DNA of 64,000 nucleotides from Macrostomum lignano (lineage: Eukaryota): NCBI GenBank assembly GCA_002269645.1, contig NIVC01001165.1:158261-222260 (forward strand). Direction: 5' to 3'. The notes beneath the pieces were generated by a model. It saw nothing but the letters and a program-made list of their open reading frames with translations, had not been told where the DNA came from and searched no databases. Both the position numbers and the translations under genes were made by a program. This document shows, one piece after another, positions 23,501 to 60,878 of the stretch (position 1 is its first letter; every line of letters begins with the position of its first letter).

Positions 23501-26210
23501 ACTTACAGCACTTACAACTCTTTTTGTGTTTTTCTCTTTCTCTTTGCTCCCTTTTTCTCATTTTTTCCTTTTCCTTTCCCCTTTTTCGTCTTTTGTTTTT
23601 TCGTTTTTTTTGGCGGTTAATCAATTTTGCGACTTACTTGGTTGGCCGCCAAATCGGTCGGCCGGATCGGCCGACTCGGCCGACTGTTGCGCATGTATGA
23701 TCCCAAGGTTATGCCTAAGCATGTTCTATTGTCATCACCCTAAAGAAAGGAAAGTGTTAACTATGGTATTTGCTATGTCAATGATAAAATTGGCTTATTG
23801 GTAATTATAAGCAATAATCACAACTAAGTATCAATGTTATATCAACTAGTCAATATGACAAATTCTTTTTTTACCTAGCAGAACTATGAAGATAGTTATA
23901 TTGCATATACAAATGACAATTATAATAATATTGACATCATATAAACTATATACATAACCTTGGGAATCACCCAGCCATCTCTATTGGCAACACATGGCTG
24001 AGAATAGTCACATGACTATTCTGTCCAATTGCAACTTATATATATGTATAAAATTCTATCTTATTATACTTAGACCAATGCTAAGACTTAGGCTCAGAGG
24101 TGCATTATAATCTATCACCTAAGGTCATTATCATCTAAGGTCAAGGACTTTATACACTGCAATTATGCGCTGCATGTGCGAGGAACTTCAGTGTGTGCCA
24201 TGATTGTGCCATAGTCTGGATCACGCTGGGTGCACGCCCAAACAAAAATTGAATAATTACAAATGCATGCCGAAAAAAATTAATGCATGCCCATTTTCAA
24301 AAATACACCATTGTTGTAACAATAAAAGACTTTTTTTACGTTACGACAATAAAAGACCTTTTTTTAAATTGCGTAATACACCCTTATTATTAAATAATTT
24401 TGTTGCTTTTAAAGCTTTTTCGGCAATACTATTTATAGCGTAATAGTGAAAAGTTTATACACGCAAAGCCAAAGGTTCATTTAAATACTCTTTTACGAGC
24501 TGGAAAAAACTGCAAAGCTAGAAATTTGCGCCTAAAAATGAACTTTTTTATCTTTTTTCTACTTTACAATAACTCTTACCTACAATTCTATCAAGTGCAT
24601 GCCAGGTGTGCATGCATACTTTTTTTGGAGTGCAAGGCCAATGTATACCCAAATTTTCAGGCATATACTACATGATACGAGGAATGGAGTGTGGTGATTG
24701 TGCGCCTCGTATGCCAGGGACCTCAGTGTGCGCCATGATTGTGCACCAAGGACCCCTGGTGTATGCTGGAATTTTCCATGGCAAAGGCCACCTTCCTGAC
24801 TATGGGGTTAGGGGATGCTCAAATATGCTAACATCAGCTTTTCAGATGAAGAAAGTGTGAAAAACATTGAAAAAATAGTTTAACAAATGTCAAATCAAAT
24901 GATTTGAGAATGTCAAAAAGTGAAATATATTCAATATTTCAAAAAAATGAAAAAAATCAAATAGAACATGACCTTAAAAATTTCATTAATTTGATATAGT
25001 TTAATGAGAAAGTGAGTAGGTTTTTTAGGCCTAGGCCTACAAAAAAATTTGAGTCTGCAGTCTGGCCTACACCCTACTATACTACAAGGTAAAGCTTAAT
25101 ACCGAATTTAATTACTAGGCCTAGCCTAAATCATGTGACGTGGGTATACTGTCTGAAAATGTGCTCACTGAATGATACTGAAAAGAAATAAACAAAAAGG
25201 CTTAGGAAAATGGGAAAAATAAAACGATAAGCTTTCTTTCCATTCCATGCCATTGCCATGCAAGGGGCATAAGTTTCAATGCATTTTGACTTGATACCCA
25301 ACATTGTTTCTTTTATTCAAATAAAATCGTGCATCATAAGTAGCTACGTGCAGCGCTTAGCCCTCATCGTGCTTCTAATTTACCTTGCAGAAGGCCGTTC
25401 GTTTGTTTGAGCCAGGAGCTAAGATGCGAGGTACATGCGCGCGGGAGGTAAAATTGATTTTTTTTCTACAATTGATTCAGTGGTAAATTTGACAGTTATA
25501 ACAAAATTGTACTAATATTATTATTTGGAGAAAATTTATTCGAAAAGAAATTAATTTGGTGCTACAAAATTTAGACCGATTTTTTCCTAAAATATTTACA
25601 TATCTTAGTTGGTACTTTTACGATTTAGTTTCAATTTCTGTCTAATGCCACATTAACTTAGTTTTTCCCACTAGATTTTATGCCATTGAGCCGTAGAAAA
25701 TTGTTTCGTGCAAAATTCTTTTATTTACATAAACTTATAAAACCCAGTAACAGACAAAAATTGTGTGCCTAATTATAATACAAAATTACTCTTTTTGCTG
25801 TTTGCCCATGGTTTCTCTGACAAAAAAAGTTTAAAGTCTTTTGTTTTAGCACCAATTGTCATTGTCATTCGCAGAAAATCGGTATGCAATTTACATACTG
25901 TATATATGTTCACGTAAGTAGTCGCTACACTAATAATGATGTATATGTTCAGTCACTGCAATTTTCTACACCGCCCGCAGTGCATATATGGTCCAGCGAG
26001 TGCGCAGCGCGTGTGCCTGTTACCTTCGCAGATTTGCAGATTTCTATATTTGCTCCATACATGTACACATGTATGTTTCAAGAATGCACACTGCGCGCAT
26101 GCGACACGCAAAAAGACGGTGATTGTGAATGCTCTGCAAACAGGTTTTGCTAAAATGGCTTATTGCATTATATATATAGCCTGCATGTTGCAGAGGAAGA
26201 CACCATGCAG

Positions 26211-29200
26211 TGTTAAATCGACTAACTCTTCGAAACCGAAAAAAATAACTAAGTAGGCAAAAATCGGATGCTTGTAGGCTTCAATACCTCTGCGTTCTCG
26301 CGCAGGCAAAACAAAACAACCAAGTTAGTAAAAAAACACGCTGACCAAAAATCACGCCCTTTTTAATTATTATTTAACGTGGGGTGGGGTTAGCAAATCG
26401 AGGGGGGTTGGCTCATGTACATTAAATAAAGAGAAAATACATGTACAATTAAATAAGTAAAACCCCAAAAATATGACAAAAAATTAACCTCCAGAACATT
26501 CCCCCCTTCCTGATTGGGGCCAATCAGCAAAAAAGCAGAAAAAAAATTGCCTCCTTGAAACTTACGTGCAATTAATTGAAACGGTTGCAAGCATAATTCG
26601 AAAAAACAGTAAACTCCTGTAAACAAAAAAATAAATCGCGCGAAATCAGAAATTAACATTAAGAACGCATGCAATGTGAAGTGTCAATTGGGATCAAAAG
26701 ATAGTGTGCCAAATATAAACCTTTGCAATCGCTAGCCAACACAAAAAATCTCTGCTAAGAAACGAACACAAACGAACTCAAAGATGCTCAAACGATAATT
26801 AGTGAAATAACACGGGATGAAAAATGTCTTGAAAACTTAAATAATCTCTAACTGTAAACATATGAAAAAATCAAAGCACAAAATCTGCCAAAAGAACTCG
26901 CATTCAAGCAAGCAACAAGTCTTTTTACTCAAAATAAAAAAACACAAATTACGCAAAAATAAGCAATCCATCACCACTTCAGCTATTAGGAGCAAAAAAC
27001 GGCAAATAATGACACGAAAAAGATAAATAATTCCAAACACCATAAACTAGCCGTCAAAAAACTACATATTTGAAAAGTTTTGTTTAGCAATAAGTCAACA
27101 GTCACTGTTCACCTCGCTGCAGCAGACACAACTTCGTCACGGGTCGCAGCACTGTCCCACCGCCAGTCCGCACCTTGGCCACGCGCACATGGCCGTCTCG
27201 TCCAGGAAATACCTCGAGAACTCGCCCGAGCGGCCAGTGTCCTCGAGGCGCATCCGCTCGTAGCGCCAAGACGATGTCGCCGACAGCGAGATCCGGCTGC
27301 TCCTTGACCCACTTGGATCTGGCATTGAGTCTTGGCACCCACTCACGCAGCCATCGGTGCCAGAAGTGCCGCACCAGCTCTTGGACACGTTGCCACCGCC
27401 GGCGCGGGTCGCGGCTGACCTCGGTCGAGACTTCCGTAGCAAAGTCACCACCCAGCTGTCCATGCAAGAAATGGTTTGGCGTCAACGGCGTGTCGTCCTT
27501 TGGGCTTGCGGTTTGGTATGTCAACGGCCTGGAATTGATAAGCGCTTCCGCACCGGTGAAGGTGGAATGCAGCTCTTCGTCGGTGATGTCAGCGTTGCTA
27601 AGGATGGCGCGCACAGCTCGCTTAGCGGCGCGAACCATAACTTCGTGGGCGCCGCCGAAATGGGGCGCCGACGGAGGCTGGAAGCGCCACTTGATGCCGC
27701 GCTCAGCTGCCGCTCTCTGGATTTTGTTCTGCTGCTCGTTTTCGAATTCTCGTAGTTCTCGCTCGCCTTTGACAAAGTTGCCGCCGTTGTCCGAGTAAAC
27801 TTCGAGTGGCCGGCCTCTACGGTTGATCATGCGCGCGAAAGCATTCAGAAACGAGTCAGAATCCAAGCTATACGCCATCTCTAGGTGCACGGCTCTCGTC
27901 TCCAAACAGGTGAACAGGGCCAAATACCTCTTCGTTCGCCGTCTTCCGCGTCCTTGTACCGTTTCAAACGGACCACCGAAGTCGACTGCCACAAAGCTGA
28001 ACGCTCGGAGAGAGTTCTTCAGCCTGGCCTCTGGCAGCGGCGCCATCTGCTGCACCTCCGGTCCTGCTTTTTGCCTTCTGCATCGCGCGCACTCCTTCTC
28101 CCATTCTCGAATGGCTTCGCGCCCACCGATCACCCAAAACTTCGTCGACATCGCTGCCAGCGTCTGGTTTGTTCCGCCATGTCCTTGATCTTCGTGATAG
28201 TGCTTCACCAACAACTTCGTGACCCAACTTCGCCTCGGCAGAATGACCGGATGCTTGGACTGATATGACAGATTCTGGTCGAACTTCAGTCTTCCGTCCA
28301 CTCGCAGCAGTCCGTCTTCATCAAGAAATGGTTGGAGACAGCGAAGCTGACTGCTGGAGAAGACTGGCTTTCCCCTACGCACCTGCTGAACTTCTGCTTT
28401 GAAAGCTTCTTCCTGAGCCACGCGTAGGATTCGATCCTCAGCTTCTTGCAGCTCCTCGACCTCGAGGTCACCAAGTCGTCTCTCATCTCGTGGAAGTCGG
28501 CAATTACTGATGAAGCGCTGAACCCATGCTGTCACGCTACGCAGCCTGCGGTAGCTCGAAAATCGCTCTGGATTCAAACGACAATCGTTGTCTGTGGTGT
28601 CGTTCGACAACAGAGTTACGGCCGCCGATTTACTACTCTTGCTCGCCTCTCGCCGAACTTCTTGATCTCCGTCAACCGATGTCGGAACTAGCCTTGCCGG
28701 CCAGCCATCCTCATCTAGCAGCAGAAACTCTGGTCCCGCGCTCCAGACCGCTGATTGGCAAAGGTCTTTGGCGCTACAGCCTCGCGATACGGCATCAGCG
28801 GGGTTCAGATCGGTCGGCACGTGACGCCACTGACAAGTCTTCACCGCCTCCTGAATGAACGCAACACGATTTGCTACGAACGGCTTGAAAATTCTACTGC
28901 GACCTCGAAGCCACCAGAGCACATTTGCACTGTCACTCCAGAACACCGACTCTCTCAGGTCTAAATCGAGCGCATCTGCCACCGTCTGGGCGAGTCGCAC
29001 GCCAAGCACCGCCGCCATGAGCTCGAGTCTGGGGATGCTGCATGCTGCCAATGGAGTTACACGTGCTTTTGCGGCTACAAGACGAACACAGATTTCGTCC
29101 AGGCTTGTGGCGCTCCTGAGATAGATTACCGCGCCGTAAGCCACCTGAGATGCATCCACAAAGACGTGTAGCACTGCCTTTTTGGTAGGATCAGGCCATA

Positions 29201-32200
29201 GACATCGTGGAATTTTCAGCATGCTCAACTCTTCAATCTCCGCTGCCCATTGCGTAGCCTTCGCGGCAACTTGCTGGTCCAAGGGCTCATCCCAATCCGC
29301 TCCATTCTGCCAAATCTCCTGCAGAAGAATTCGCCCGCGAATTGTAAATGGACTCAGAAACCCGCATGGGTCGAACACCATCGCAACGCGCTTGAGCAGC
29401 TGTCGTTTCGACTCAACGGACACTTCCTTCGCACCTGCATTTCCCGTGATCGCGAGCATATCATCATTGGCTGTCCAAGTCACTCCCAACGCCTTCGACG
29501 TCGCCATTTCTCCACGAAGCACGTGCTGCGCTTTCACCGCTCGATCCTCCGGAGCTACTGTCTCCAACACCTCAGACGCGTTCGACATCCATTTTCTCGC
29601 ACGCATGCCGGCTTTTTCCCACAGAGCTGTCAGTTCGCGGCGCAACTGGATAGCTTCATGGACGCTGTTCACTGAGTCCAAACTGTCGTCCATGTAGGTC
29701 GACTTCAGAATGGTTTCTGACGCTCTTGGAAAAGTTTCCTGATGACTCCTAGCATGCTCCTGCGACACGAACTGAGCAAGAAACGGCGAACAATTAACTC
29801 CAAAAACGACACTCTGAAACTCGAATACCTCAAGTTTGCCCGTTTCGGTCCTGTCTCGCCACAAAAATCGAAAGTAGCACCGATCTTCTGGCTTGAGGCG
29901 AATTCTGAGGTACATCTCTTCAATGTCGCAAACGATTGCCACTGGACCGCGACGGAATCGAAGGAGCACTTGAAATAGGTCGTTCTGAAGCTTCGGTCCT
30001 GGAAGGATGACGTCATTGAGACTCACTCCTTGGCAGCGCGCGGAAGCGTCAAACACGATACGGACCTTGGTGGTGTCCTTGTCTTCTCTGATTACCGGAA
30101 AATGCGGCAGGTACCATTCGGTGTTTTGAAGCTCACTGCTGTCTTCGACCTTCTTGAGATAACCTTTTTCCAACTGGCCTTCCAACACCTCCTGATACGC
30201 TTTTGGCAATCCTTCACTCCTCTGCAGTCGCTTCTCCGTGCTGATCAGTCTGCGTTCCGCAGCTTCACGATTGCTCGGCAGAGCACGATTTTGAGACTTC
30301 CATGGAATGGCTACCTGATATCTTCCTTCCACCACCGACATCGACTCCTTGACTACCGCCACAGCACGCTGCTCATCCGCAGTTAACGTCCCTCTTTCGC
30401 GGTTCAGCTCAGCTACATCAGGAACTTCCTCGATCGCCCACAACCTTCGAACCTGACTGTCGACCTGATCTTGACACTCGTGGCAGAGGAACGATTCCCC
30501 GCTCTTGCTGCTTCCCTCATCCGAACCTAACTGCCCGATGCAGGTCCATCCAATAGGAGTCAGTCGAGCTATTGGTTCCCCTGGCATTCCACAGACTTCT
30601 TTGCAAGCCAGATGCATCTCGGCATTGTCGACACCGATAAGCATGTCAACCGTCTTCCGGCTTGATGTTGACTCAAACGGAATGCCTCTCAGATGCGCCC
30701 AGTGCTCCGCCAGTTGACTCCAATCAACTGCCTTCATTCCGCCGGTTACTTTCTCCGCTGTGAAAGCAACAATTTTTGTCTCAAACGCTGCATCGACACT
30801 CCGGACTGTCACCTCTACAGGCGCTGTTTCAAACGACTCGACTCCTCCGTTGAGCACCTTAACGTTTATGCGCTGAAGTTTACCTTCGAGTCCCAGCTCT
30901 GCTGCTACGTCCGCATTGAGGTACGTGCGCGTACTCGCATCATCAAGCAACGCGTTGATCCGAACTTGGCGCTCACCAGCCACCAATATCACCGGCACCG
31001 TCCTCAACGCAGTTTCCTTTACGACTTCAGCCAGCATAGTGCGCTCCTTCTTCGTCGCCGCTGATATGTCCTCCGCGGGTTTTCGTGCCTCTCCTTCGCC
31101 GCCTCTCGTCACTGCAGCTGCTGGTTTCGGCTCCCGCTTCTGGTGAAGCATTCGATGGTGTTTTCCTTGGCAACCATCTACGCCACAGGTTCTAGACCGC
31201 CGACAAGCTAAACCAGAGTGATTGACGCCGAGACAATGAAAGCACAGCTTCTTCTCACGAGCAACGGCCCATCGCTTCACTACATCCATCTCCACAAACT
31301 TCGGGCACTCCCAGGCGCCATGGCTTCCTTCACAGACACGGCAGTTTTTCTTGCGCTGCTCATCGGCTCTCGTTGACTCCGCGACAGCGCCAAAATGCGT
31401 TCGAGCTGTTTCCGTGCGCTGCATCCCGCTGAATTTCTTACTTTGCTCCATCTTCCCTGCTCCTGGCCCATTCTGTGCCGCAACTCCATGCACTGCCTCC
31501 ATAGCAACCGTCTGATACTCAGCCTCCCGCAGCAGCCATTGATGAAGAGCGCTGAGCGTGTCATTTCTGCCATTCTCCCCTACCCATCGGTGATACCGTG
31601 CCAGGGTGTCAGTCGGCAATTTCTTTTGCACGCGAAGATGAAGCAATCCATTGCTGTCTAGTTCAGCTTCATGACCCGCCTCTATCAGATTGATAACCGC
31701 TACATCCACCAGATCAGCCAGCTTCTTCAACTGAGGCGCGCTCTCCGTCACAATGGGCCGAAAACGGTCTAGATCCTCCAACACTAGCACCAGCCGGCGC
31801 CGCTCTCCTCCATATTCTCTCTCCAACCTATCCAGAGCCGCCTTGTACGCAAATTCAGAATGCCCCAGGTTGGCTATTAGCTTCAGCGCATCGCCCTGCA
31901 GACACTGCCTCAGTTGCAATAGCTTGTACACTCGAGAGGAGGGTGCAGCATCTACACACGCGTAAAAGGCCGCCTTCCACCCCTCGTATTGACGCTTATC
32001 ACCTGAGAAACTGGGAATCGCCACCCGCTGCAATTGCCGCCACATGTCCTGACTGACCTGCCTCTCCGCTTCTTCTCTCACCCTCTGTGTACACTCTTGC
32101 TGAACGATTGGCTCTCTAAGTTGCCACTGTACACTGGCTGACTGTGAGGTGGCTGGCCTGGGTGCAGGGTTTTGTTTTATCGATCGCTCGCCTGACCCCC

Positions 32201-33207
32201 CTTCGTGGGCAGTCCAATCAGCTTTTTCACTCCTGTCTGGCGCAGCGCTTACACCCACCTCAGCCCCAATCGACTGTTCAGCCAAACCTGAACCTGGGCT
32301 TGCCCTTTCACACGGGCTCTCTGCCTTAGTGCTGCCAGTAACAATTTTCAATCGCCTCAGCTCCTCTGCCAACTGCTCATGCCGTTGTTGATAGTCTCTC
32401 TCTAGCTCTCTCTGCACCTCTTCCAACTCCAGCGCTCTGTGCTCTGCGGCTTGCACTTTTCGCTGCTCTTCCTCACGCCTCTGCTGTTCTTCAGACTCCG
32501 CCAAGCGATCCTGTTCCTCCCTCTCAGCTGCTTCGCTTCTGCTACGATCTTTCCAGAACTCGGTCATCAGACCCACAGTCTCACCATAGTCCTTTTCAGC
32601 ATTCTCCAGCTCCTTGATCGTTTGGCGACGCAGTGGCAGGTCGTTTCCGGCGAGCTCCAACAGCTTCTCCAGCTCAGTTGTCACCGCCTCGAATAGCTTC
32701 TCCATGAGAGTCGCTTGCTGTTGTACTTCGGCGCCGTCTTGACCACCAGCAGCGAGTTGTTGTACCAGCCGGTTTCTTCCTTTGGTGAATGCGGCCTTGG
32801 CCCTCGTCTTGGCGGCCTTCGCGTCCATCAGCTTGCGTTCTTCCTCGTCCGCCGGCGGGTAGTTCGACTCGAATTCTTCTCCGTCCTTTTGCATTTTTCA
32901 ACCACGCTCTGCTACCAGTTGTTAAATCGACTAACTCTTCGAAACCGAAAAAAATAACTAAGTAGGCAAAAATCGGATGCTTGTAGGCTTCAATACCTCT
33001 GCGTTCTCGCGCAGGCAAAACAAAACAACCAAGTTAGTAAAAAAACACGCTGACCAAAAATCACGCCCTTTTTAATTATTATTTAACGTGGGGTGGGGTT
33101 AGCAAATCGAGGGGGGTTGGCTCATGTACATTAAATAAAGAGAAAATACATGTACAATTAAATAAGTAAAACCCCAAAAATATGACAAAAAATTAACCTC
33201 CAGAACA
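26211..33207 (-). mobile_element. Full-length BEL/Pao LTR retrotransposon, apparently intact and young
   Basis: Two 288-bp LTRs (26211-26498, 32920-33207), TG...CA, identical by eye. 5-bp TSD TGCAG. PBS TGGTAGCAGAGC (initiator tRNA-Met) at 32906-32917. PPT GGAAGGGGGGAA next to the 3' LTR. Confidence 0.97.
27102..32894 (-). CDS. BEL/Pao gag-pol polyprotein, 1930 aa
   Basis: Gag with CCHC arrays, protease (LLDDAS), RT (DIEEMY, YMDD), RNase H (VFVDAS) and integrase (HxxxxHGG, CARC, DFGGP, SDNGGNF), with no interruption. Confidence 0.97.
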   Translation of the reverse strand: MQKDGEEFESNYPPADEEERKLMDAKAAKTRAKAAFTKGRNRLVQQLAAGGQDGAEVQQQATLMEKLFEAVTTELEKLLELAGNDLPLRRQTIKELENAEKDYGETVGLMTEFWKDRSRSEAAEREEQDRLAESEEQQRREEEQRKVQAAEHRALELEEVQRELERDYQQRHEQLAEELRRLKIVTGSTKAESPCERASPGSGLAEQSIGAEVGVSAAPDRSEKADWTAHEGGSGERSIKQNPAPRPATSQSASVQWQLREPIVQQECTQRVREEAERQVSQDMWRQLQRVAIPSFSGDKRQYEGWKAAFYACVDAAPSSRVYKLLQLRQCLQGDALKLIANLGHSEFAYKAALDRLEREYGGERRRLVLVLEDLDRFRPIVTESAPQLKKLADLVDVAVINLIEAGHEAELDSNGLLHLRVQKKLPTDTLARYHRWVGENGRNDTLSALHQWLLREAEYQTVAMEAVHGVAAQNGPGAGKMEQSKKFSGMQRTETARTHFGAVAESTRADEQRKKNCRVCEGSHGAWECPKFVEMDVVKRWAVAREKKLCFHCLGVNHSGLACRRSRTCGVDGCQGKHHRMLHQKREPKPAAAVTRGGEGEARKPAEDISAATKKERTMLAEVVKETALRTVPVILVAGERQVRINALLDDASTRTYLNADVAAELGLEGKLQRINVKVLNGGVESFETAPVEVTVRSVDAAFETKIVAFTAEKVTGGMKAVDWSQLAEHWAHLRGIPFESTSSRKTVDMLIGVDNAEMHLACKEVCGMPGEPIARLTPIGWTCIGQLGSDEGSSKSGESFLCHECQDQVDSQVRRLWAIEEVPDVAELNRERGTLTADEQRAVAVVKESMSVVEGRYQVAIPWKSQNRALPSNREAAERRLISTEKRLQRSEGLPKAYQEVLEGQLEKGYLKKVEDSSELQNTEWYLPHFPVIREDKDTTKVRIVFDASARCQGVSLNDVILPGPKLQNDLFQVLLRFRRGPVAIVCDIEEMYLRIRLKPEDRCYFRFLWRDRTETGKLEVFEFQSVVFGVNCSPFLAQFVSQEHARSHQETFPRASETILKSTYMDDSLDSVNSVHEAIQLRRELTALWEKAGMRARKWMSNASEVLETVAPEDRAVKAQHVLRGEMATSKALGVTWTANDDMLAITGNAGAKEVSVESKRQLLKRVAMVFDPCGFLSPFTIRGRILLQEIWQNGADWDEPLDQQVAAKATQWAAEIEELSMLKIPRCLWPDPTKKAVLHVFVDASQVAYGAVIYLRSATSLDEICVRLVAAKARVTPLAACSIPRLELMAAVLGVRLAQTVADALDLDLRESVFWSDSANVLWWLRGRSRIFKPFVANRVAFIQEAVKTCQWRHVPTDLNPADAVSRGCSAKDLCQSAVWSAGPEFLLLDEDGWPARLVPTSVDGDQEVRREASKSSKSAAVTLLSNDTTDNDCRLNPERFSSYRRLRSVTAWVQRFISNCRLPRDERRLGDLEVEELQEAEDRILRVAQEEAFKAEVQQVRRGKPVFSSSQLRCLQPFLDEDGLLRVDGRLKFDQNLSYQSKHPVILPRRSWVTKLLVKHYHEDQGHGGTNQTLAAMSTKFWVIGGREAIREWEKECARCRRQKAGPEVQQMAPLPEARLKNSLRAFSFVAVDFGGPFETVQGRGRRRTKRYLALFTCLETRAVHLEMAYSLDSDSFLNAFARMINRRGRPLEVYSDNGGNFVKGERELREFENEQQNKIQRAAAERGIKWRFQPPSAPHFGGAHEVMVRAAKRAVRAILSNADITDEELHSTFTGAEALINSRPLTYQTASPKDDTPLTPNHFLHGQLGGDFATEVSTEVSRDPRRRWQRVQELVRHFWHRWLREWVPRLNARSKWVKEQPDLAVGDIVLALRADAPRGHWPLGRVLEVFPGRDGHVRVAKVRTGGGTVLRPVTKLCLLQRGEQ

Positions 33208-33480: not shown

Positions 33481-33850
33481 AGGCGGGGTGGGGCAGGCCG
33501 GAGGTGGGGTGGGGCAGGCCGGAGGCGGGGTGGGGCAGGCCGGAGGCGGGGCGGGGCAGGCCGGAGGGGGGTGGGGCAGGCCGGAGGCGGGGTGGGGCAG
33601 GCCGGAGGCGGGGCGGGGCAGGCCAGAGGCGGCGTGGGGCAGGCCGGAGGCGGGGTGGGGCAGGCCGGAGGCGGGGCGGGGCAGGCCAGAGGCGGCGTGG
33701 GGCAGGCCGGAGGCGGGGTGGGGCAGGCCAGAGGCGGCGTGGGGCAGCTGCCGGAGGCGGATTGGGGCAGGCCGGAGGCGGATTGGGGCAGGCCGGAGGC
33801 GCAATGGGGCAGGCCGGAGGCGGGGTGGGGCAGGCCAGAGGCGGGGGTGA
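33481..33850. repeat. GC-rich 21-bp minisatellite (GGGGCAGGCCGGAGGCGGGGT), about 17 copies
   Basis: Tandem copies. The G-tract pattern is compatible with G-quadruplex formation. Confidence 0.95.
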
Positions 33851-34912
33851 GGTCAAAAGTCTATTGCTAAAAATTAGGATTCCGAGAATTTAGTGGGACT
33901 TTGGCTTCAGTTTCAATAACAATATTGGCTCTCTACAAAACTGTGATACGAGTACAGTTGAAAATTTCAAGACTATAATTTTTCGTAAGCTGTTCAAAAG
34001 GCCGAATAACCTCGAGTCCTTATGATGGCCCAGCATTTGCAGCAAGACACAGGTTTTCCTTTTATTCCACGACCGTTTCCTGCTCAAGTCAAGGAGTTCT
34101 TTAATCAACATCTGAATTGAAAACGAGTTTTTTCAATTTTACCTGATGAAGCCACGTACAGAATGTGCTGCTACAGTTGTACAAGTTGTAATGCTGGCAT
34201 ATCAGCTGAAGAAGTTCTAGGTAATTTTTCTCTTAATAAGTGTCAGAAAGGTTTCTTCGGAGCTAAAATCTGTCATCGGATTTCGGATTAAGCTAAAACT
34301 TAAACCTAAAAAACCTTCATATTTGCATAAGGATTGGCCTTAGAAAAATGCTTTTAAACCAGTGTCGTACTTTATAATCTTGATTTTCGAGCTTCGCGTC
34401 CTTCGTAATAATGAATCCATTATATAATGCAGATTCGGACTTTCTAACCCAGAATGCACATGTAATTCACTCTGACTGTATTCGCCTTTTTATTCCCTAG
34501 TGTTAGCACTTGCATAGATCATCAATAGCTTACCTCCGCTACCATAGACGAAACGGAATTCTTTATTTGGCATCAGTGCATTATAGCATGTCGATATTTA
34601 GCTCTAGTTTATCTCTGGTAGAGAAAATAATCTCCGCTCCCTGTATAGATCCATCGCGGCTCTCAGGCCATGAAATAAATTAGAATAATGCACTTAAACT
34701 CGGAGATACTCTATGGCACAAACTCCTCGGCTTGGAACGGCCGTGAACTGTCTATGGCCAAGAAAATTGCACCAGCGGACAGGCAAATCAGCTTAAAGAG
34801 GAGAGACAAAAGCTGCCCACATGCAGAGATCAACAACTATACCGGCTATACTGTAATTGTTGAATCTCACAGCCAACTTGAAAAATTCAGAACCCAACTG
34901 ATTTGGAATCCC

Positions 34913-35217
34913 ATGGCAAAGTTGTGGATTTTTGCTCTACTCTTGGTGGCCGTCTTTATTGTTGGCTCGCACTGCTGCAAACTTCGTAAGTTTTCTGTTG
35001 GCATTCTGGGCTGCCCAATCAGTTAGTACTATACTCGTACATGTTAATCGCCTCGTTAACAATATTGTAATTTTCAGCGCCAATAAAACCCAAGTGCCTC
35101 AAGGCGTACAGAAAATGCACAGGTGAAAACCAGTGCTGTACTCCCTACTGCGAGCCCATCAGCGGGCCGAACAACAGGCGGTGCACCTACTCAACTAATT
35201 CTGGACGAAAGAAATGA
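34913..35217 (+). CDS. Secreted inhibitor-cystine-knot (knottin) peptide precursor, 70 aa, 2 exons (34913-34985, 35078-35217)
   Basis: MAKLWIFALLLVAVFIVGSHCCKL, phase-1 intron (GTAAGT...TTTTCAG, 92 bp), then PPIKPKCLKAYRKCTGENQCCTPYCEPISGPNNRRCTYSTNSGRKK*. Cysteine spacing C-x6-C-x5-CC-x3-C-x10-C; AATAAA near 35348. Confidence 0.85.
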
Positions 35218-35620
35218 TCAATGAGTTCGGCCATGGCTAAGACCGCGCGGCAGCCAATCTGCATTAAACTGTTTCTTTGATTGTTTGATTAGTCGTTCTT
35301 GAATAATTGCTGTTAAACTCGCGGATTTCTCAGCTCAGATAATTCGAATAAAATTAATTAAAATCGAAAAAAATAATTTAAGCTACCGGAAGCAAGACTT
35401 CACGTATTTATTTTTATTGTATTGTCACTTTGGCAAGTTCAAAAAATTGACCTTATTAAAAAGTACCGCAAAAATGTCGGTTACTCCCATTAGGTCGGAA
35501 ATATCTATTGTCGGAAATTGCTCTTTGGCTTGTGGGTTTAACTAACCGTGGTCATAATTGCGTGCTGAGCAAATGCAAGTAGACATTCCTAGTACTGTTT
35601 GTGCAGTGGGGTTGTAGCTT

Positions 35621-35983
35621 TTTTATTAGAGGCAGGGGGGTTGTGTGCACACTGGCGCATTTTAAGCGACATAGGCACACAACCGGCGAGAGGCATTACT
35701 GCCCATTCCGCCGACTCCCCTGAGCAGGCATACAAGCGCGCGGATACGTACGCAGGCACACACTCACATAGGAGTGTACAGCGGCCCTAACTTTATATTA
35801 TCGTTAGGCATGTACACTTCACTGCGCCTCGGGGGGGTTGGCTCTCAGGCCGTTAATTGCACGAGCAGAGCCAAGCCGGGATTCCAATTCAGCCCCAAAT
35901 TAATGTGACTGCACTTGGAATCGAACCTGGGTCACTGGCACACCAGAGCAGCTGCGCTACCGCTGGCCGGGCTACGGCCCCCC
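35621..35983 (-). mobile_element. tRNA-derived SINE, copy 2
   Basis: Near-identical to 9288-9630; 13-bp TSD GGGGTTGTAGCTT (35608-35620, 35984-35996). Confidence 0.88.
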
Positions 35984-38531: not shown

Positions 38532-40395
38532 ATGAAACTTCTGATTCTGACGTTCCTGAGTCTGGTGGCTCTGTCCTCCGCCTCCGACTGCCAGCAGCCG
38601 TCGCTCAAGCTCACGAGGTTCCCCGGCTGCCCAGCCGACCCCGGCTCCGGGTGGCGGTCTCTGCAGCCGGTCACCAAGCAGCAGTGCGCGATGCTCTGCG
38701 CCAAGCAGTCCTGGTGCGCAGCTTTGACCCTGGATGCTGCCAGCACCGCTGATGGCATCGGGCAGCTCGGTGAGTGCCGACTGTTCACTGCGGAGACCGC
38801 GCTGCTCGGCTGGAATTCGTCCTGTGGCGGACAGTCCGGTCTGGCGTCCAGCGACAGGCTGAGCAGCTTCCGGACTGGTGAGACCGGAGTTCTGTTTTCA
38901 ATTTTTGCAGGACTCGTATTGATCAAACTCACTTTGGCCTTTGCAGAGTACCTTGCGGCTCGAAACGTGACTCACAAGCGGGTCCACATTCCTAACAACT
39001 CGGTGAAGATCTTCGCCACATTCCTTCAGCACCAGCCGGCTTTCTCATCGCTCATTGGCTGCGTTGCCAAGTGCAGCGAGTTGCCGGCCTGTCGCGGGAT
39101 TGTGTTCAACTCCAGCAACTGCTCTCTGCTCACCGACTACCCGCTGTGCCGCTGGTTCGAGCAGCCTCCGAGCAGCTCTAAGCTGGCCGTCTATGTGAGT
39201 GTTGGGAAAGCAGTGCTGGATCGGTGACATCATTTAGGCACTTTTATGGATAGCCGATCTAACAAACCGTTTGAATTTCCAACTCAGGAGTTCCACACTG
39301 TGGGCACTCAGCAGTGCTTCGAGACCGTCAACCTGCGAGTGTCGGACGCGCTGAGCTTCGACCGGCTCTGGGCCGAGTACAAGACCGGCTTCGGCACTTA
39401 TCACGGCAACTACTTTGCTGGTGAGTTACTAGGGGCTCTTTTACTGGAGATTCTGGTCGTATACGCACTGTGTTGTTCATAAAAATATTACATAGTTCTA
39501 AACCTAATCGATCTCATTGGTAAACATTTGAATAAGGCCGAAATTCATGTAGACATGTATGGTGTGTGTCTTGAATCTAAACAATAATTTTTGTTCGAAA
39601 GCATACTTTTAACACCGAATTTTATGAAAAAATAAGATACCGTTTAGATTTTTTCCCATCAAAGTTAACATTAAAAACTCCAATTAGCAGATAGAGAAGA
39701 TACAAGCGGTGACAATGAAATATTTTCTTTTGTCAAAAACCAAATGTGTCTGCCTTGCGCAGCTCAAGTAGCCGCGTGTAAAATCTTCCGGCAGTTTAGA
39801 TGAGATAAATGCACGGAGACACTGTTTATATACATAGAAACGAGACGAATTACATTTGAAGTGCTTCAATCAAACAAGCGATGCTTATGAATTCTGGTAA
39901 GAAAGCAAGCCATGTAAAATTTTCTCACAAACAGGCCTGGAGTGGCTGCACGCCCGGACCAGCGCTCAGCCCAGCAGCAACCGGTTCCGCGTCGACCTGC
40001 TGTACTGGAACGACACCTACATCTACGCCTACTACCTGAACGTGCTCATTCTTGCCGAGAGCACCAACTACACGCTGTCTGACTTTAGGTTTCAGGCTGC
40101 TGGAGGTCTTCGCCAGGACTTGCTCAATGTCAGGAAAATCCAGTTTCAGACTCGAGACCGTGGATCGAGTAGATGCAAACGTGGACAGAACTGTTCTGAA
40201 ATGTACCAGCCTCACTGGCACGCATGCTGCCATGCCTCAGGTCCATTCGGCAGGTACTTCAACTACCCGACAGCGCTGAATGTGCCAGCTAGAAGCCGAG
40301 CTAAGGGCATCGTTTGGAGACGCAATGCCCCCACAAACATCACCGATGGATGGTACTACAGCTTCAAGCAGCTGGAGATTCTCATGCTCACCTGA
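38532..40395 (+). CDS. Secreted protein: signal peptide, two PAN/Apple-like domains and a C-terminal fibrinogen-related domain; 4 exons (38532-38877, 38947-39194, 39288-39420, 39935-40395), about 395 aa
   Basis: MKLLILTFLSLVALSSA; CAMLCAKQSWC and CVAKCSELPACRG PAN motifs; FDRLWAEYKTGFG...GNYFA|GLEWLH and FQTRDR FReD motifs. GT-AG introns with phases 1,0,1. Confidence 0.85.
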
Positions 40396-40790: not shown

Positions 40791-42520
40791 CATCGCATAG
40801 TCCTCTCTGTCCCAACCCACCTGCGGCCTTTTTACCAGTGATTCTAGTGTAGAAAGATGGTATAGCTCGATGAACGATGAACAGCTTCATGAATGAAGCT
40901 GTTTAACAGCTTCACAGATTAGATGTTCAACTGAGGTACACGTACAAAGGGGGATTATATCGGAGAGGTTGCTCCACCTTTAACTGCTGCGTGATCAAGC
41001 ACACAACAGAACTGTAGAAATTTTAGGCTATGGCGCTGATTAATGCTTGCGGATTCGCTACTCTTCCAGTCGAGAGGTCCACTGTGCTTGAAAACCCAGT
41101 GTGTACATGTAGGTTTAACGTTGAGTTTCGCGTATTTCTACTATGAGTAGCGTGAAGCTGCCAAGATCATAGTAAACGGATAGTACTGTGATGATGGGGC
41201 TCAAGGGCTCGGTCCTTTCGTGCCCCTTTCCCAGACCCGGGTTCGTGTACTGACCCTGGCTGCGGTCCTCCACTGACACGCGTACGACGCGGTGTCCGTC
41301 GGGACTAGGCTGCTCGAGCGTACGACGCACGACAGCCTACAGACTCGCGTACGACGCAGAGCTGCTTGGGGTGGGACCGGCGTACGAAGCACTTAATCCC
41401 TCTAAGGTGCCTAGTACAGATGCAGACCCAAATGACGTACAAATTGGAAGGCTTACCAGCCGCGATTTCAGTCGTACAAGAAACAGCGCCGTCAGCACAG
41501 TGGTGATCTCGATATTCTTTACTTATATATTTGTCTAGCAATTCTGCGAAGAATAGCAATTCAGCAACCAACGCTGGCACAATCGCCGAGGAGCCACGAA
41601 GATGACGAGAATGGGGTCTCAAGGGGGTCTGAATAAATAGGCAGCAAATTGGGGGTCGAGGGCGCGGGATAAAGGCAGAAAAGGGGGCTTAGACATCAGC
41701 CAAGGCAACGCATGAGCTGTACCAGCCAATCGCCGGGGCGCAGCACGGCAGACTGGGACTGGCAGCCAATCACAAACAGGGGCGGGGCAGCAAAGCTAAC
41801 AAAAGAATGGGGCGGGGTCGCACGCAAAGAATGGGGGGGTACGCACGCGCAAAAGTGCAGGTGGGTGAGTCAGAAAAAATCTAAGGAGGGGGGAGGGGGA
41901 GAGGACGGCCCACTGGCCCGGTGCAGCAACTTAGCAAAGAGCACACTGTCATAACGCATTCATGACACTCCCTCCCCCTAGACAAAAGTTCGAGTTCGAA
42001 AAGTCGAATATTGAAATGATGCTACTATAACAAAAAAATTGAACAGAGGAACAAACCGCATTTGAAAAATATTTTGGACTCGCATGGCAACTAGTTCGAA
42101 CAAAAAACAAAACCGCAGTGATTATACCGTTTAAAAATGACGAAGAAACCTTCAAACATAGGATAGTGAGTACGCATCATTAGGAAGCAAAACGCAAATT
42201 TTGGGAAAAACTCACTTTAACAAAAACGCTGAAGTTCGAAAAAAACGCTAAACAAAAAAACAAAACATTTACCCTCACAAGTAATACTAGCACTGCTTCC
42301 CTGCATCCCGCCGAGTGCGGCCGTCGCTCTGGTGCCTCGTCTCCCTGTCGCTACTGTCGCCGGTTGCTCTGGTCGCTCTGCGCTGGTCGTCGAGTCCTGA
42401 GGTTGCTGCACAGCCGTGTCGCTCCGTCAGCACCCGTTAAGGCCGGTCCACCTCCGCTCCGCTGTCCCTGGGTCTGCACTGCAAAGTCCCTAGCCCCAAA
42501 GTCCCTAGGAAGACATAGCC

Positions 42521-43183
42521 TCAGTCAGAGCACGAATCCCACAGCCTACGGAGGGCACCCAGGACCAAACCCTGGCGTCGCAGGTCGAACAGCGGGAACA
42601 CCACCATCACCGACATGTAGACCGCTTGACACGCTTGGCGACTCCACCGACGAACTCCGTGCCCCGGATACTTGCGACCGTCTCGCTCCAAGTAGCCCAG
42701 GATCTGCAGCATCAACTCCGGACCGAATTCCTTGAAATCCACCGAGGCAGTGGCGCACTTCCCCTTCAGGGCTAGCAGCACCTCAAAGATGCCCCACGGG
42801 TCGCCCTTCCGTATTGCCTGGTGCAGTTTCTTCCGACTGGGTCCTACGTTCTCCAGTTCCGCGACGGTCACTGGTCGGCACGGTCTTGTCTGAAGCCGGT
42901 ACGCTCTCTGCAGATTTTCTTCAATCAGGTTTCTACATCCGGCACAATCTTTCTCCGCTTCCCATGACGTCTCAAGCTCCTCTACACCGGCCCACTGCAG
43001 CAGATACTCCGCTCCTCGCTCCGTAACTCGTACTCCTAAGACCTTCTCGACCTCGTACTCCTCCGGCAGTGTCTCACTCGCCTCGTTCATCTCTTCGTCC
43101 GCCTCCTCAGCTAATCGGTCGCTCTCTTGTCGCCTTTCTATCTCTTCTCGGAGATCGTCAGGCATGTCGTCATCCTCTAACAT
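42521..43183 (-). CDS. Accessory ORF of element A: acidic linker + chromodomain + C-terminal helical region
   Basis: EYEVEKVLGVRVTERGAEYLLQWAGVEELETSWEAEKDCAGCRNLIEE matches the chromodomain pattern. It is in the same frame as the upstream J-domain ORF, separated by one TAA. Confidence 0.85.
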   Translation of the reverse strand: MLEDDDMPDDLREEIERRQESDRLAEEADEEMNEASETLPEEYEVEKVLGVRVTERGAEYLLQWAGVEELETSWEAEKDCAGCRNLIEENLQRAYRLQTRPCRPVTVAELENVGPSRKKLHQAIRKGDPWGIFEVLLALKGKCATASVDFKEFGPELMLQILGYLERDGRKYPGHGVRRWSRQACQAVYMSVMVVFPLFDLRRQGLVLGALRRLWDSCSD

Positions 43184-43186
43184 TCC

Positions 43187-43429
43187 TTATGCGAGCCGAA
43201 GCATCTCATCCCGGTCACGAACAGCATTTCCAAAGATATCGTACAGCTTTCTAAGGAACGGACACGACAGTGTTCGGTACGCCTCTTCGCACTCCAGGAA
43301 TCTCTTCCGCGTCTCCTCTGTTGCGCTCTTGTCAGGGTGCAGTTCGCGTGCTCGACCGTAGAACGCTTTCCGAATCTGTGCCGCAGACGCCCACAGCTGC
43401 ACTCCAAGACACTCGTAGAGGTCCGCCAT
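43187..43429 (-). CDS. Accessory ORF of element A: J-domain (Hsp40/DnaJ type)
   Basis: DLYECLGV...ASAAQIRKAFYGRARELHPDK...FLECEEAYRTLS...RKLYDIFG: all four J-domain helices and an intact HPD motif. Confidence 0.92.
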   Translation of the reverse strand: MADLYECLGVQLWASAAQIRKAFYGRARELHPDKSATEETRKRFLECEEAYRTLSCPFLRKLYDIFGNAVRDRDEMLRLA

Positions 43430-43471
43430 CTGTAACAGTCCGGCCTAACTCCGATGAGCAATGAGACACGC

Positions 43472-44394
43472 ACGACATGAACCTCCCTTCCCCCTTGGCT
43501 ATCCAAGCGCCGTACACCGGACCCTTCTTCAGTAGTGGTACACCGGGACCCCAAACCGATCTGGCGGACGCCGCAGACGTCTTGGTCGCCCTGCTTCCTC
43601 CTGTGCCGTCCTCACTTCCTGCTCGGGTACGTTGGCGTCGTTCGGCTCTGCCTCATCCTCTTCGTCCTGCTCCTCGTCGTACCGCGCCTCATCTTCTTCT
43701 TCTTCTTCTTCTGTCCTTTTATCGCCGGGGGGGGGCGTGGACACGGGCACGTTTATTGAGAGGTGCAGGTACGTCTGTGTCTGGCCATGTTGGTCTTGGC
43801 CAGGAGTCTGCCGCAGCTGGGGCACGGTGCTCTCGTGCTGCGGTAGATCCTCGCGCCCAGTTCTTCCACTCTCGCCGGTTGCTCTGGCAGGTGGGCCTGG
43901 ACTCTCGTTGGTCCGCAGGTTTTGCGGTGCCGCGCGAAATTCGACTTGCTCCGCCAGCTCCCGCATTGGGCGCACAGGACGAGGCCTCCAGCTTGCTTTT
44001 CTCCCTGGCATCGTTTCTGGTGGTTTTTCCTGGTTGCTTCTGAGGTGAACGTGGTCAAGCAAATTGGGCATGGTAGCTGCACTCTTTCGAAGATGTGGTG
44101 CATGCGCCTCTGGTGGATCGCCAGTCCTCCTCTTGACGCGCAGGTCTTAGTACACCCCTCGTAGCGGCAGCTACGACATGAACCTCCCTTCCCCCTTGGC
44201 TATCCAAGCGCCGTACACCGGACCCTTCTTCAGTAGTGGTACACCGGGACCCCAAACCGATCTGGCGGACGCCGCAGACGTCTTGGTCGCCCTGCTTCCT
44301 CCTGTGCCGTCCTCACTTCCTGCTCGGGTACGTTGGCGTCGTTCGGCTCTGCCTCATCCTCTTCGTCCTGCTCCTCGTCGTACCGCGCCTCATC
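43472..44394. repeat. 222-bp direct repeat pair (43472-43693 and 44173-44394) duplicating the pol C-terminal tail, stop codon and downstream leader
   Basis: Both copies encode DEARYDEEQ...RRPPDRFGVPVYHY* followed by the same ~60 nt; identical by eye. Confidence 0.95.
43753..44172 (-). CDS. Accessory ORF of element A: one C2H2 and three C2HC zinc fingers
   Basis: CRYEGC..x12..HQRRMH upstream of the annotated Met, then CPIC...HQKRC, CAQC...HRKTC and CPSC...HRRTC. AATAAA overlaps the stop. Confidence 0.75.
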   Translation of the reverse strand, partial: SCRYEGCTKTCASRGGLAIHQRRMHHIFERVQLPCPICLTTFTSEATRKNHQKRCQGEKQAGGLVLCAQCGSWRSKSNFARHRKTCGPTRVQAHLPEQPARVEELGARIYRSTRAPCPSCGRLLAKTNMARHRRTCTSQ

Positions 44395-44920
44395 GTCGTG
44401 CTCTTCTTCGTCATCGTCTGCTTCTCGACGCTCAGGTCCGGGCTCACAGTCTTCGGCCAGCTTTCGGGTGTCCGGTGGAGCGTGATCTCTTGGATCTTGA
44501 AACCGCAGCTGAAGATCTTCAAACTCTTCATCTTCCTGCTCGGATTCCTGGTCCTGCGGCCCTCGCGCTGCGGTCCACCTCTGGGTCTCGCCCCGTTGCA
44601 CTCTCTGCCTTCGGCTTCGTCCAGCAGCGGAATTACCACGTCGCGGCCTGGTTTTTCCCGAACTGGCCCTCCCAATTTCCTCTCCTGTCTCTTGACCGTC
44701 TGCCGCCTCCGTCTGAACCTGAACCGGCCGGAGATTGTTGAAGTGCACCACCTTGGTCTTCTGCGGCTGTGGGATCCTGCACTCGGTACAACGCATCTGA
44801 CAGCTTCTCCAGGACCTTCACTGGGCCGCGCCAGTTGATATGGAACTTGCTTTTCTCTCCCATCTCCAAGCACGGATAGTACAGCAAGACAGAGTCGCCC
44901 TTCTGAATCGCTTTGCCCTT

Positions 44921-47900
44921 TGTTAGATGTATTAATTTGATATAGACTTTTATCTATGGCATGACCGCCACTAGCATTACAGTACAACTTGAATGAGCGG
45001 TGCCTCGTTCTAAGGCCACAATAAATAAAAGTGATGGTGAGAGCTGCTCAACTGGAGCACTTAAGAAATTACCGAGTTAGCTATAGGCTACATCAAAATT
45101 GGTGTTATAGTGTCTGTGCCTTCAGAATCAACACTGGTGACGAGGATGGCGATGATTCCAATCGAACCCCTGGAGACAGACGTGCCTGCCGAGGTCAGCA
45201 GATGGCTACAGCGATTTGAGGCTATAGCCAAAGTTAACAAGTGGAACGACGACGTGCTGAAGTACGCGCTTATAGCACAACTGGGGAAGAAGGCGTTCAA
45301 CCTTTTGGCTGACGCTGTACTGCCAGCAAAACCAGAGGAAAAGACCTTCGATCAGCTGAAGACGCTACTAACAAACGAAACGAAAGCATCAAAGTCGGGA
45401 CTGGCCTATAGATACGCTTTCCACCACATGAAGCAGGAAAGCGGAGAAGACACGTCGGCCTATGCTAGGAGACTTCGACAAGCCGCGGACAACTGTGAAT
45501 TCACGGACCTAAACGACAGGTTGCGCGACCAGTTTGTGTTTGGTCTGTCTAACAAAGACATTGTGAGGAAACTGCTAACTGAAAAACTCGCAGACCTCAC
45601 CTGGGAGAGGGTGACGTCCGTGGCAAGCGCATGCGAAGCCGTAGCGCGAGACGAAAAACAGATGAGCAGCAGCGAAATCTTATCGGTCAAGAGGACGGAT
45701 CGACCGCGTTTGCCAGAGACTCGACAGAACGATCGCAAAGCGTGGCAGCCAACCGGGTACGGCAAGTGGAATCAACAAAGCCATCGCGACCAAACAAAAT
45801 TTTTCTGCTGTGGCAAGGATGGACACCGCAAGGACGTCTGCCAGCACCGTTCTAAGACCTGCCTGAATTGCGGAAAGACTGGCCACCTGAAAGCTGTGTG
45901 TAAGTCTAATCCATCAAGACCTGCTCAAGGGTCAAGACAGACTGTCAAGGTGAGAGCGATCGAACCGCAGAAAGATTCTTCAGGACCTGTAGGAGCACAG
46001 GACAGCATCTTCTCCGTAAATGGCAGCTGTGAGGAGCCCAGCAGGCGCAGGATAACAAGGCTTCTGCTGGTTAATGGGGCCAATCTTCATATGATTATGG
46101 ACACGGGATCCGTCTCATCATTTGTATCGCTAAAGGTGTATCAAGGCCTTCCGTTGAAATCCAATTTAAGACCGACAGCCCGACGATTTACAGCATACCA
46201 AGGAGATCCGGTGCGTGTTTTAGGAGAAGTTACTGTCAGAGTAGAGCGTGGCGGCGCAGTAGCAAACCTGCCATTGTTTGTCGTTGACCACAGAGATGTG
46301 GAGCCCATATATGGTTTGGACTGGATTGCAGAGCTGGAGCCGGAGCTTTATGTCGCCATAACCCAAGGTGGTAATGCTGACACTACTGAAGAACGGCAAT
46401 CAAGTCGCATGTCTCCAGTCGACACCGTGAAGGTGTCACTATCGATCAGGCCAGGCGCAAAACCTGTTTTCTGCAAGCCAAGACCGATTCCCTATGGTAT
46501 TCAAGAAGACGTAAAGAACGAGCTCCGAAGAATGGAATCTGAAGGACAGTTAGAGAAAGTGCAATCAAGCGAATGGGCCACGCCTATAGTGTGTGTCAGA
46601 AAGCAATCTGGTAGTATCAGGATTTGTGGCGACTATAAGATAACACTGAACCCAGTCTTGGAAGACATGGTGTCGACGACGCCATCAATTGATGAAGTGA
46701 TGTCCAGATTGGGTCGAGCCCGGAAATTCTCCACGCTAGATCTCACAAACGCATACTTGCAGGTATCAGTCGACGCCGAGACAAGTCAGATGCAAACTTG
46801 GAGCACACCCTTCGGCCTGTTTCGTCCAACCGCACTGGCTTTTGGAGTAAAACAAGCACCCGCTATCTTCCAGTCACATTTGGATAAACTCCTGCTAAAC
46901 CTCGACGGCGTGATATCCTACCAGGACGATATCCTCATCTGGGGCCAAGGTCAGACTGATCATGACAAAAGGCTCAACACTGTAATGAAGATCCTGGAAA
47001 ACAATGGACTTCGCATTAATGCTGACAAGTCTGTATTAAACAAGTCGTCAATACGATTTTTGGGCTACGAGATCAGTGCTGATGGAATTCGCCCTCTAAA
47101 GGAGAAAGTGGAAGCCATTGCCGGATTAAAAGAGCCAAGCGACCTCAAACAACTACAGGCGTTCTTGGGAATGGTCGATTTCTATGGACGATGCATTCCT
47201 AACTTGGCTACGTTGAAAGAGTCATTGACCAATCTAACCAGGTCAGGTGTGCGATGGACCTGGGGAAGGCAAGAACAGAAGGCCTTTAACACAATCAAGG
47301 AAAGATTGCTAAACGCCGGACTTCTAAAGTCATTCGATCCAGCTGACAATATTATACTTACGACTGATGCATCACCGGTGGGACTGGGAGCCGTGTTGGA
47401 GCAGTCGTCTGGTCCTGTTCTATTTATCTCCAAGACGTTGACACAGGCTGAGAGAAATTATGCACAGATCGAAAGAGAGGCGCTAGCCATAGTCTGGGCG
47501 GTTAAACGCCTCCACAAATATCTGCTAGGACGCAAGTTCGTGCTCAGGACGGACCATCACCCACTGAAATTTTTGTTCAACCCTGGAAAGGCCTTGTCTA
47601 CGGTTGCTGCTGCTAGGCTACAGCGATGGGCAATCACACTCATGGAGTATGATTACGTCATCGAGTGTAAGCGTTCCGAGGAGATCCCTGTCGCCGATGC
47701 CCTATCTCGATTGAATAATAGTGCCGCGGAGAGCGAGCAATTCGACGTCAACTCGATTCAGGACAGTCTACTCGATATACCAGTTGACAAGCAGCGGCTT
47801 AGGCGCACTTCAATGCTTGATCAGGAGATGCGACGGCTGTTTGCGCTCGTCAAGCATGGCTGGACAGCCCAAGGAATCAAGGAGCTACCAACATACGCTC

Positions 47901-54879: not shown

Positions 54880-55080
54880 ATAGGCAGCAAACTGGGGGTC
54901 GAGGGCGCGGGATAAAGGCAGAAAAGGGGGCTTAGACATCAGCCAAGGCAACGCATGAGCTGTACCAGCCAATCGCCGGGGCGCAGCACGGCAGACTGGG
55001 ACTGGCAGCCAATCACAAACAGGGGCGGGGCAGCAAAGCTAACAAAAGAATGGGGCGGGGTCGCACGCAAAGAATGGGGG
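54880..55080 (-). promoter_or_regulatory. U3 promoter elements of the element A 5' LTR
   Basis: Two GGGGCGGGG boxes, two CCAAT boxes and a TATTTAT downstream of them on the minus strand. Confidence 0.5.

Positions 55081-60694: not shown

Positions 60695-60878
<184 letters not shown>

Follow-up and report, generated by a model that had tools for sequence, protein, structure and literature searches.

A two-exon gene in repeat-rich DNA of Macrostomum lignano, likely encoding the precursor of a secreted knottin-like peptide

The window, by which we mean the whole 64,000-nucleotide stretch of Macrostomum lignano DNA analysed here, contains a small spliced gene on its forward strand. The sequence and translation of positions 34500–35700 reproduced the two-exon gene with its phase-1 intron as it was first described in a sequence-only reading of this DNA, at the same coordinates, and the mechanical list of open reading frames indeed holds only fragments of it. 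The features of the gene are as follows:

34688..34912, plus strand: in-frame upstream extension of 75 codons, coding in the GenBank 145-aa model and probably 5'UTR
34913..34985, plus strand: coding part of exon 1, 73 nt, Met1 to Leu24 and the first base of codon 25, encoding the signal-peptide-like MAKLWIFALLLVAVFIVGSHCCKL
34913..34969, plus strand: probable signal peptide, residues 1–19 if cleaved after VGS, by rule-based sequence reading
34986..35077, plus strand: phase-1 intron, 92 nt, with a GTAAGT donor and a pyrimidine-rich TTGTAATTTTCAG acceptor
35078..35217, plus strand: coding part of exon 2, 140 nt, remainder of codon 25 to Lys70, ending in TGA at 35215–35217
35095..35184, plus strand: six-cysteine core CLKAYRKCTGENQCCTPYCEPISGPNNRRC (C31–C60), spacing 6/5/0/3/10, the sole strict-pattern match in the window
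35203..35214, plus strand: C-terminal GRKK, candidate for carboxypeptidase trimming and Gly-directed amidation, leaving Ser66-NH2
35347..35352, plus strand: candidate polyadenylation signal AATAAA, a pattern match 130 nt past the stop codon

The spliced coding sequence (CDS) comprises 213 nt from ATG 34913 and specifies a 70-aa precursor, MAKLWIFALLLVAVFIVGSHCCKLPPIKPKCLKAYRKCTGENQCCTPYCEPISGPNNRRCTYSTNSGRKK, followed by the stop codon. On the 3' side of the gene, ATTAAA additionally occurs at 35263 and 35357 as a pattern match.

The gene had been thought to be unannotated, which proved incorrect: GenBank already holds it, though uncharacterised, as "hypothetical protein" BOX15_Mlig005023g1/g2 (PAA71431.1 and PAA73350.1; UniRef A0A267FCC6). 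This 145-aa M. lignano protein, 100% identical across the query, was the single true match of the exon-2 peptide in an exhaustive phmmer search of 1.84 billion representative proteins. Two contigs of assembly GCA_002269645.1 carry the gene, namely NIVC01001165.1 (locus L002), which is 100% identical to window positions 24688–45217, and NIVC01001016.1 (locus L001), which carries a homeologous copy. The GenBank model has the identical splice junction (...HCCKL/PPIKPK...) but starts at an in-frame ATG at 34688, 225 nt upstream. For Mlig_3_7, the assembly to which the window belongs, the annotation in GenBank rests exclusively on a genome-guided transcriptome from RNA-seq (StringTie, TACO, and de novo assembly), with open reading frames called by TransDecoder and repeat-overlapping transcripts excluded (PMC5730564). 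Given that the annotation is based on RNA-seq, we infer that the 34985/35078 junction is transcript-derived, which indirectly supports, via the annotation pipeline, its presence in RNA. Given the use of TransDecoder, which takes the longest ORF by design, the long N-terminus of the 145-aa model would reflect that choice.

Of the two possible products, the 70-aa prepropeptide initiated at ATG 34913 is most likely the functional one, and not the annotated 145-aa protein. If the annotated protein starting at ATG 34688 were the true product, the hydrophobic segment (its residues 79–93) would act as an internal signal or a type-II anchor, yielding a membrane-tethered or late-cleaved protein with an extracellular cysteine-rich domain. 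This would agree with a TransDecoder ORF that is complete from 34688, so that the assembled transcript reaches at least there, with an in-frame stretch (34679–34912) open over 78 codons, for which the chance was estimated at ∼0.03, and with positive residues (K, R) preceding the hydrophobic segment. However, the hydrophobic stretch of 14–15 residues is below the typical length of a membrane span, a canonical n/h/c signal layout directly after ATG 34913 is unlikely to be a coincidence, and the extension matched no Pfam family and has no confident predicted structure, with AlphaFold pLDDT values below 50 for residues 1–16 and 25–59 of the 145-aa model. Furthermore, so long a 5'UTR would bring in interference from ATGs in other frames at 34713 and 34821 and from a mini-uORF at 34670, and trans-splicing, frequent among M. 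lignano mRNAs, could take the extension out (PMC5730564). Between the homeologs, the extension shows a single difference, at 34912, too few to gauge constraint. We therefore regard the 145-aa protein, including its membrane-tethered or late-cleaved form, as an unlikely product, while under either start codon the cysteine-rich domain would, judging from the sequence, face the secretory lumen.

The choice of start codon has consequences for gene discovery. A pipeline for antimicrobial peptides (AMPs) of helminths dropped proteins without an N-terminal signal peptide (PMC10414684), and the gene would by inference be lost to signal-peptide-based screens because the 145-aa start buries its signal peptide. 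When the longest ORF is called on transcript assemblies, the signal of a small secreted peptide can end up inside a longer protein, and signal-peptide filters then miss the peptide.

A check for selection, suggested in the sequence-only reading, was run by comparing the gene with its homeologous copy. Over a 4.3-kb alignment, the window and L001 differed by 86 substitutions in 4312 aligned sites (2.0%). The 213-nt CDS contained four, one in exon 1 and three in exon 2, and all four were third-position synonymous:

34957: T>C, F15, exon 1, synonymous relative to the homeolog
35091: P29, exon 2, third-position synonymous relative to the homeolog
35115: K37, exon 2, third-position synonymous relative to the homeolog
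35139: C45, exon 2, third-position synonymous relative to the homeolog

The two homeologous copies accordingly encode identical proteins. Of all random single-base changes in the CDS, only 22–29% would be synonymous, which puts the chance of seeing four out of four at 0.002–0.007, for a sample of four substitutions only. With every substitution synonymous in both exons, the proposed frame gains support, as does the phase of the splice, and a meaningless ORF is disfavoured; four substitutions between two homeologs thus support the view that the 70-aa reading frame is under constraint.

The intron of the homeologous copy is interrupted, at L001 10343–10566, by a palindromic MITE of 226 bp. Its terminal inverted repeats (CACCTTTTCACGTTC...) are long, and the target duplication appears to be TA. 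This element is missing from the window copy, and in L001 the splice sites and the protein stay intact despite it. Upstream of the gene, a block of 1,016 bp (window 33896–34911) is without any difference from L001, against a background of 2.0% substitutions and a second-longest identical run of 219 bp. The block stops two bases before ATG 34913; it may represent a tract of gene conversion, an artefact of assembly or polishing, or an upstream region under unusual constraint.

These data bear on whether the gene could be non-functional, being either an ORF that arose by chance where repeat-rich DNA is transcribed or a de novo ORF of very recent origin without selected function. The gene is set in repeat-rich DNA, between transposable elements and minisatellites, with a BEL/Pao element 1.7 kb upstream and nested LTR elements downstream; no homologue was found in our protein searches; and a loose knottin regular expression is expected, from simulation, 0.12 times per 64 kb, which corresponds to more than 1000 matches in a 760-Mb genome. 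The strict six-cysteine spacing, on the other hand, matched once when the window was translated in all six frames and never in 100 simulated 64-kb sequences, and a start codon, a signal layout, a canonical phase-preserving intron, a six-cysteine framework, and a processing motif combined within one 305-bp unit appear, as read from the sequence, to be more than chance. Considering also that the substitutions are synonymous in frame in both exons, that both homeologs are intact despite the MITE in one intron, and that the gene survived the filter removing repeat-overlapping transcripts (PMC5730564), we consider a non-functional ORF very unlikely.

Beyond the M. lignano protein itself, the exhaustive phmmer search of exon 2 against the 1.84 billion representatives recovered no homologue, two matched repeat proteins being rejected as multi-stretch low-complexity matches. 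A word-indexed protein search returned no match for the 70-aa query and only the query itself for the 145-aa protein. Screening of the window and L001 for paralogues with tblastn and a cysteine regular expression yielded none, and the gene region is single-copy there. Among the loose-pattern matches, those at 22.3–23.3 kb were rejected as translated minisatellite and that at 26876–26965 as a chance match; the minisatellite at 22–23.5 kb translates to a repetitive CDL.RPRC that mimics the cysteine framework and so produces false loose-pattern matches. The searchable full text contained no expression, localisation, or proteomic record for Mlig005023, which was also missing from the supplementary files of PMC5816591, PMC7336406, PMC12896417, PMC6410801, and PMC5946080, weak evidence given that these files are possibly incomplete.

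The N-terminus of the 70-aa precursor is signal-like, consisting of an n-region MAK, a 14-residue h-region LWIFALLLVAVFIV, and a c-region GSHC with the small residues G18, S19, and C21. Signal peptides typically have a hydrophobic core of this length, whereas a membrane span would usually be longer. Thus, the signal peptide proposed in the sequence-only reading is legible in its n/h/c layout, although the annotated start at 34688 would place the same segment internally. Cleavage may fall after S19, and cleavage after G18 or C21 would likewise satisfy the −3/−1 rule. The precursor has eight cysteines, at positions 21, 22, 31, 38, 44, 45, 49, and 60; the SHCC motif, previously read as containing one extra cysteine, in fact contributes two (C21 and C22). 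Predicted cleavage after G18 or S19 would keep all eight, and cleavage after C21 would keep seven. The translation confirmed the core C-x6-C-x5-CC-x3-C-x10-C.

At the other end, the precursor terminates in ...TNS-G-R-K-K-stop, in which glycine is followed by basic residues only, in agreement with the earlier description of GRKK as an amidation-type motif. A C-terminal glycine with basic residues is the classical motif for trimming and PAM amidation, and flatworms produce amidated neuropeptides, so that the amidation machinery exists there. By analogy, the predicted peptide would be trimmed and amidated at this site.

The loops of the six-cysteine core (6, 5, 0, 3, and 10) fall inside the knottin consensus CX3-7CX3-6CX0-5CX1-4CX4-13C of Pallaghy and Norton. 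Neither the core nor the mature or full peptide matched a Pfam family at E ≤ 10, so that none of its toxin, conotoxin, or plant knottin models recognises the candidate. In the PDB sequence search, matches had E values of 0.18–2.4, none of them significant; four of the eight listed, including the top four, were knottins (alstotides, which are alpha-amylase inhibitors, GTx1-15, and U4-hexatoxin-Hi1a), and the other four were forms of 5,6-dihydroxyindole-2-carboxylic acid oxidase. AlphaFold2 run without an alignment gave one model with a mean pLDDT of 71.9 and four others at 46–55 (one of five above 55). The best model has three short strands (17–19, 24–26, and 33–35), and this predicted three-stranded sheet adjoins Cys III/IV, V, and VI, as would be expected of a knottin. 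Searched with Foldseek against the PDB, the predicted structure matched mostly knottins (∼28 of the 34 listed matches; TM 0.45–0.68), with a best E value of 0.26 and none below 0.001; PAFP-S, SOTI-III, ACTX-Hi:OB4219, grammotoxin, maurocalcin, DkTx, J-atracotoxin, psalmotoxin, and Alo-3 were among those listed. AlphaFold may simply recognise the cysteine pattern, in which case agreement in Foldseek would not be proof of a knot. Given that homologues and a Pfam family are both lacking, the fold assignment rests on the cysteine spacing and the single-sequence model, and on this basis a knottin-like fold is plausible for the predicted peptide. Of the inhibitor cystine knot claimed in the sequence-only reading, what stands is the spacing within the consensus and the predominance of knottins among structural matches, while neither Foldseek nor the sequence search provided a significant match.

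Compared with knottins in general, including spider and cone-snail toxins, the plant and arthropod antimicrobials PAFP-S and Alo-3, and mussel CRP-I, the candidate shares the C-C-CC-C-C framework with loops within the consensus, a small size, a cationic character, and a (predicted) signal peptide. Unlike these families, it has no significant sequence similarity to any of them, shows no obvious propeptide in its precursor, comes from a free-living flatworm, and adds two N-terminal vicinal cysteines (CC-x8-), an arrangement that we know of in no knottin framework. In the classical knot, disulfides link I-IV, II-V, and III-VI, and the third bridge threads the ring; should the mature peptide keep its N-terminal pair, its own disulfides might be arranged otherwise. 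No description of a knottin from free-living flatworms or Macrostomum turned up in our literature searches.

The scorpion calcins deserve separate consideration, given that the sequence-only reading had described the gene as calcin-type. The spacing C-x6-C-x5-CC-x3-C-x10-C is indeed identical to that of maurocalcine (1C6W) and imperatoxin A (1IE6), whose sequences were verified against the PDB. Both calcins and the candidate are basic and have a Leu after Cys I and an Arg before Cys VI in common. A relationship does not follow from this: in ungapped alignments, only 2 of 24 (maurocalcine) and 3 of 24 (imperatoxin A) non-cysteine residues are identical, the calcin basic cluster KKCKRR, which is needed for activation of the ryanodine receptor (RyR), aligns with TPYCEPIS and is missing in the candidate, and the PDB sequence search (E ≤ 10) returned no calcin. 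Calcins proper are closely alike in sequence, activate ryanodine receptors, and penetrate cells. After Cys VI, the candidate carries a six-residue tail and GRKK where calcins have one residue; it has an N-terminal extension of 11–13 residues bearing the CC pair, unlike calcins; and calcins come from a different phylum. PAFP-S, a plant antifungal knottin with loops 6/8/0/3/10, differs from the candidate in the length of loop 2 only, the other four (loops 1, 3, 4, and 5) being equal, so the calcin spacing is not diagnostic. We therefore rejected calcin homology as a resemblance in spacing only; at the level of sequence, the match appears to be a likeness within a common scaffold and no sign of calcin membership or ryanodine-receptor activity.

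Precursors of framework VI/VII conotoxins (O-superfamily) are similar to the candidate in other respects. They have the same C-C-CC-C-C framework, a C-terminal amidation signal of glycine and basic residues, and an intron between the signal exon and the mature-peptide exon. In contrast to them, the candidate lacks the conserved O-superfamily signal sequence and a propeptide region, and no sequence similarity was detected.

Taken together, we consider it probable, with moderate confidence, that this is a genuine, transcribed, lineage-restricted M. lignano gene, present as two homeologs, whose product is most likely the 70-aa precursor of a secreted knottin-like peptide, for which we propose a function as a host-defence or other extracellular effector. 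The N-terminal hydrophobic segment would take the nascent chain into the ER, with cleavage around residues 18–21, after which the six core cysteines would pair as three disulfides in a manner resembling an inhibitor cystine knot. The N-terminal cysteine pair would either be lost with the signal peptide or make a fourth bridge. A carboxypeptidase would remove the C-terminal KKR, and PHM/PAL would convert the exposed glycine to a Ser-amide. The predicted mature peptide, cationic with a pI of ∼9 and a mass of ∼5 kDa, would then be secreted and act extracellularly through target binding.

As to its role, our best guess, by analogy, is an effector peptide that a gland secretes for host defence or another extracellular function. 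M. lignano is a grazer of diatoms that, to our knowledge, lacks a venom apparatus, and where small cationic knottins occur in non-venomous invertebrates, they typically serve in defence. In flatworms, classical lophotrochozoan AMP families have been reported to be absent, with uncharacterised, mostly cysteine-rich candidates in their place (PMC10414684). It is on these three considerations that we lean towards host defence, while the peptide may instead have a reproductive or channel-modulating role.

A seminal-fluid or other reproduction-related peptide, secreted by the prostate or another reproductive gland and acting on the mating partner, would fit a small, predicted secreted protein without homologues. 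This profile agrees with reports that reproduction-related genes evolve rapidly in Macrostomum and that putative seminal fluid proteins were sought there in a screen (PMC7336406, PMC5977470). However, Mlig005023 was missing from the supplementary files of PMC7336406 (reproduction-related RNA-seq) and PMC5816591 (germline), with the qualification that older studies use other transcript IDs, and the homeologs, identical in protein and with synonymous changes only, point to constraint and not to rapid evolution, albeit over a short timescale; we find a reproductive role improbable. Less probable still is a toxin of ion channels, calcin-type or otherwise venom-like, that is related to maurocalcine or imperatoxin A, or resembles them in function, and acts on ryanodine receptors or other channels. 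The spacing and the cationic charge of the peptide are in its favour, as are the position of maurocalcin at rank 9 in the Foldseek list (TM 0.45/0.55) and the presence of several spider channel toxins among the weak sequence and structure matches. Against it stand the few non-cysteine identities, the missing pharmacophore, the absence of calcins from the PDB sequence search, the non-diagnostic spacing, a net charge (K+R minus D+E) of +4 for the 37-residue core compared with +7 for maurocalcine, and, from general knowledge, a diatom-grazing host without venom apparatus.

A more far-reaching version of the preferred reading, that of a secreted knottin-like peptide, can be put forward tentatively, although we hold it to be rather unlikely in its entirety. 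The gene would then encode the first peptide of the knottin type from free-living flatworms, lineage-restricted and possibly of de novo origin, with an undescribed eight-cysteine framework CC-C-C-CC-C-C in which the vicinal pair forms a fourth bridge on a calcin-spaced knot, antimicrobial or channel-modulating in function, and hidden by a mis-called start. If true, this would be one more independent occurrence of the knottin scaffold, and a verified secreted knot peptide would, in a model open to transgenesis and RNAi, offer a tractable entry to the biology of flatworm secretory effectors. Otherwise, the gene is one orphan peptide gene among many, encoding an uncharacterised member of a well-known class of molecules.

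The surroundings of the gene contain several further features. The BEL/Pao LTR retrotransposon upstream (26211–33207) has 289-bp LTRs that are 100% identical, a TGCAG target duplication, and an intact 1930-aa gag-pol ORF on the minus strand (27102–32894). Given that L001 has an empty site at this position, the insertion is very recent and specific to one homeolog. Minisatellites occupy 33481–33846, between this element and the peptide gene. Downstream, a Gypsy-type element with identical 214-bp LTRs, a 1286-aa ORF, and a CCCTT duplication is nested in an older LTR element (41187–55210 and 44921–49227); the older element has 784-bp LTRs that are 99.1% identical, with gag (53170–54318) and protease-RT (51152–53236) on the minus strand. 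A dispersed repeat of ∼340–365 bp with 90% identity lies at 35619–35983, 400 bp downstream of the gene, and at 9289–9628, 26 kb upstream, and the repeat is also present at the homeologous locus. Long minisatellite arrays are located at 1299–2313, 5744–6847, 11442–12225, 22040–23505, 60695–61991, and 62236–63055, and Rfam and tRNA scans of the window returned no match. On the plus strand 3.3 kb beyond the peptide gene (38532–39227), a PAN/apple domain is found in a 231-aa ORF that is absent from the called genes listed for L002, and at the edge of the window an ORF fragment on the plus strand (17–679) has a strong match to DUF229 (E = 7e-40).
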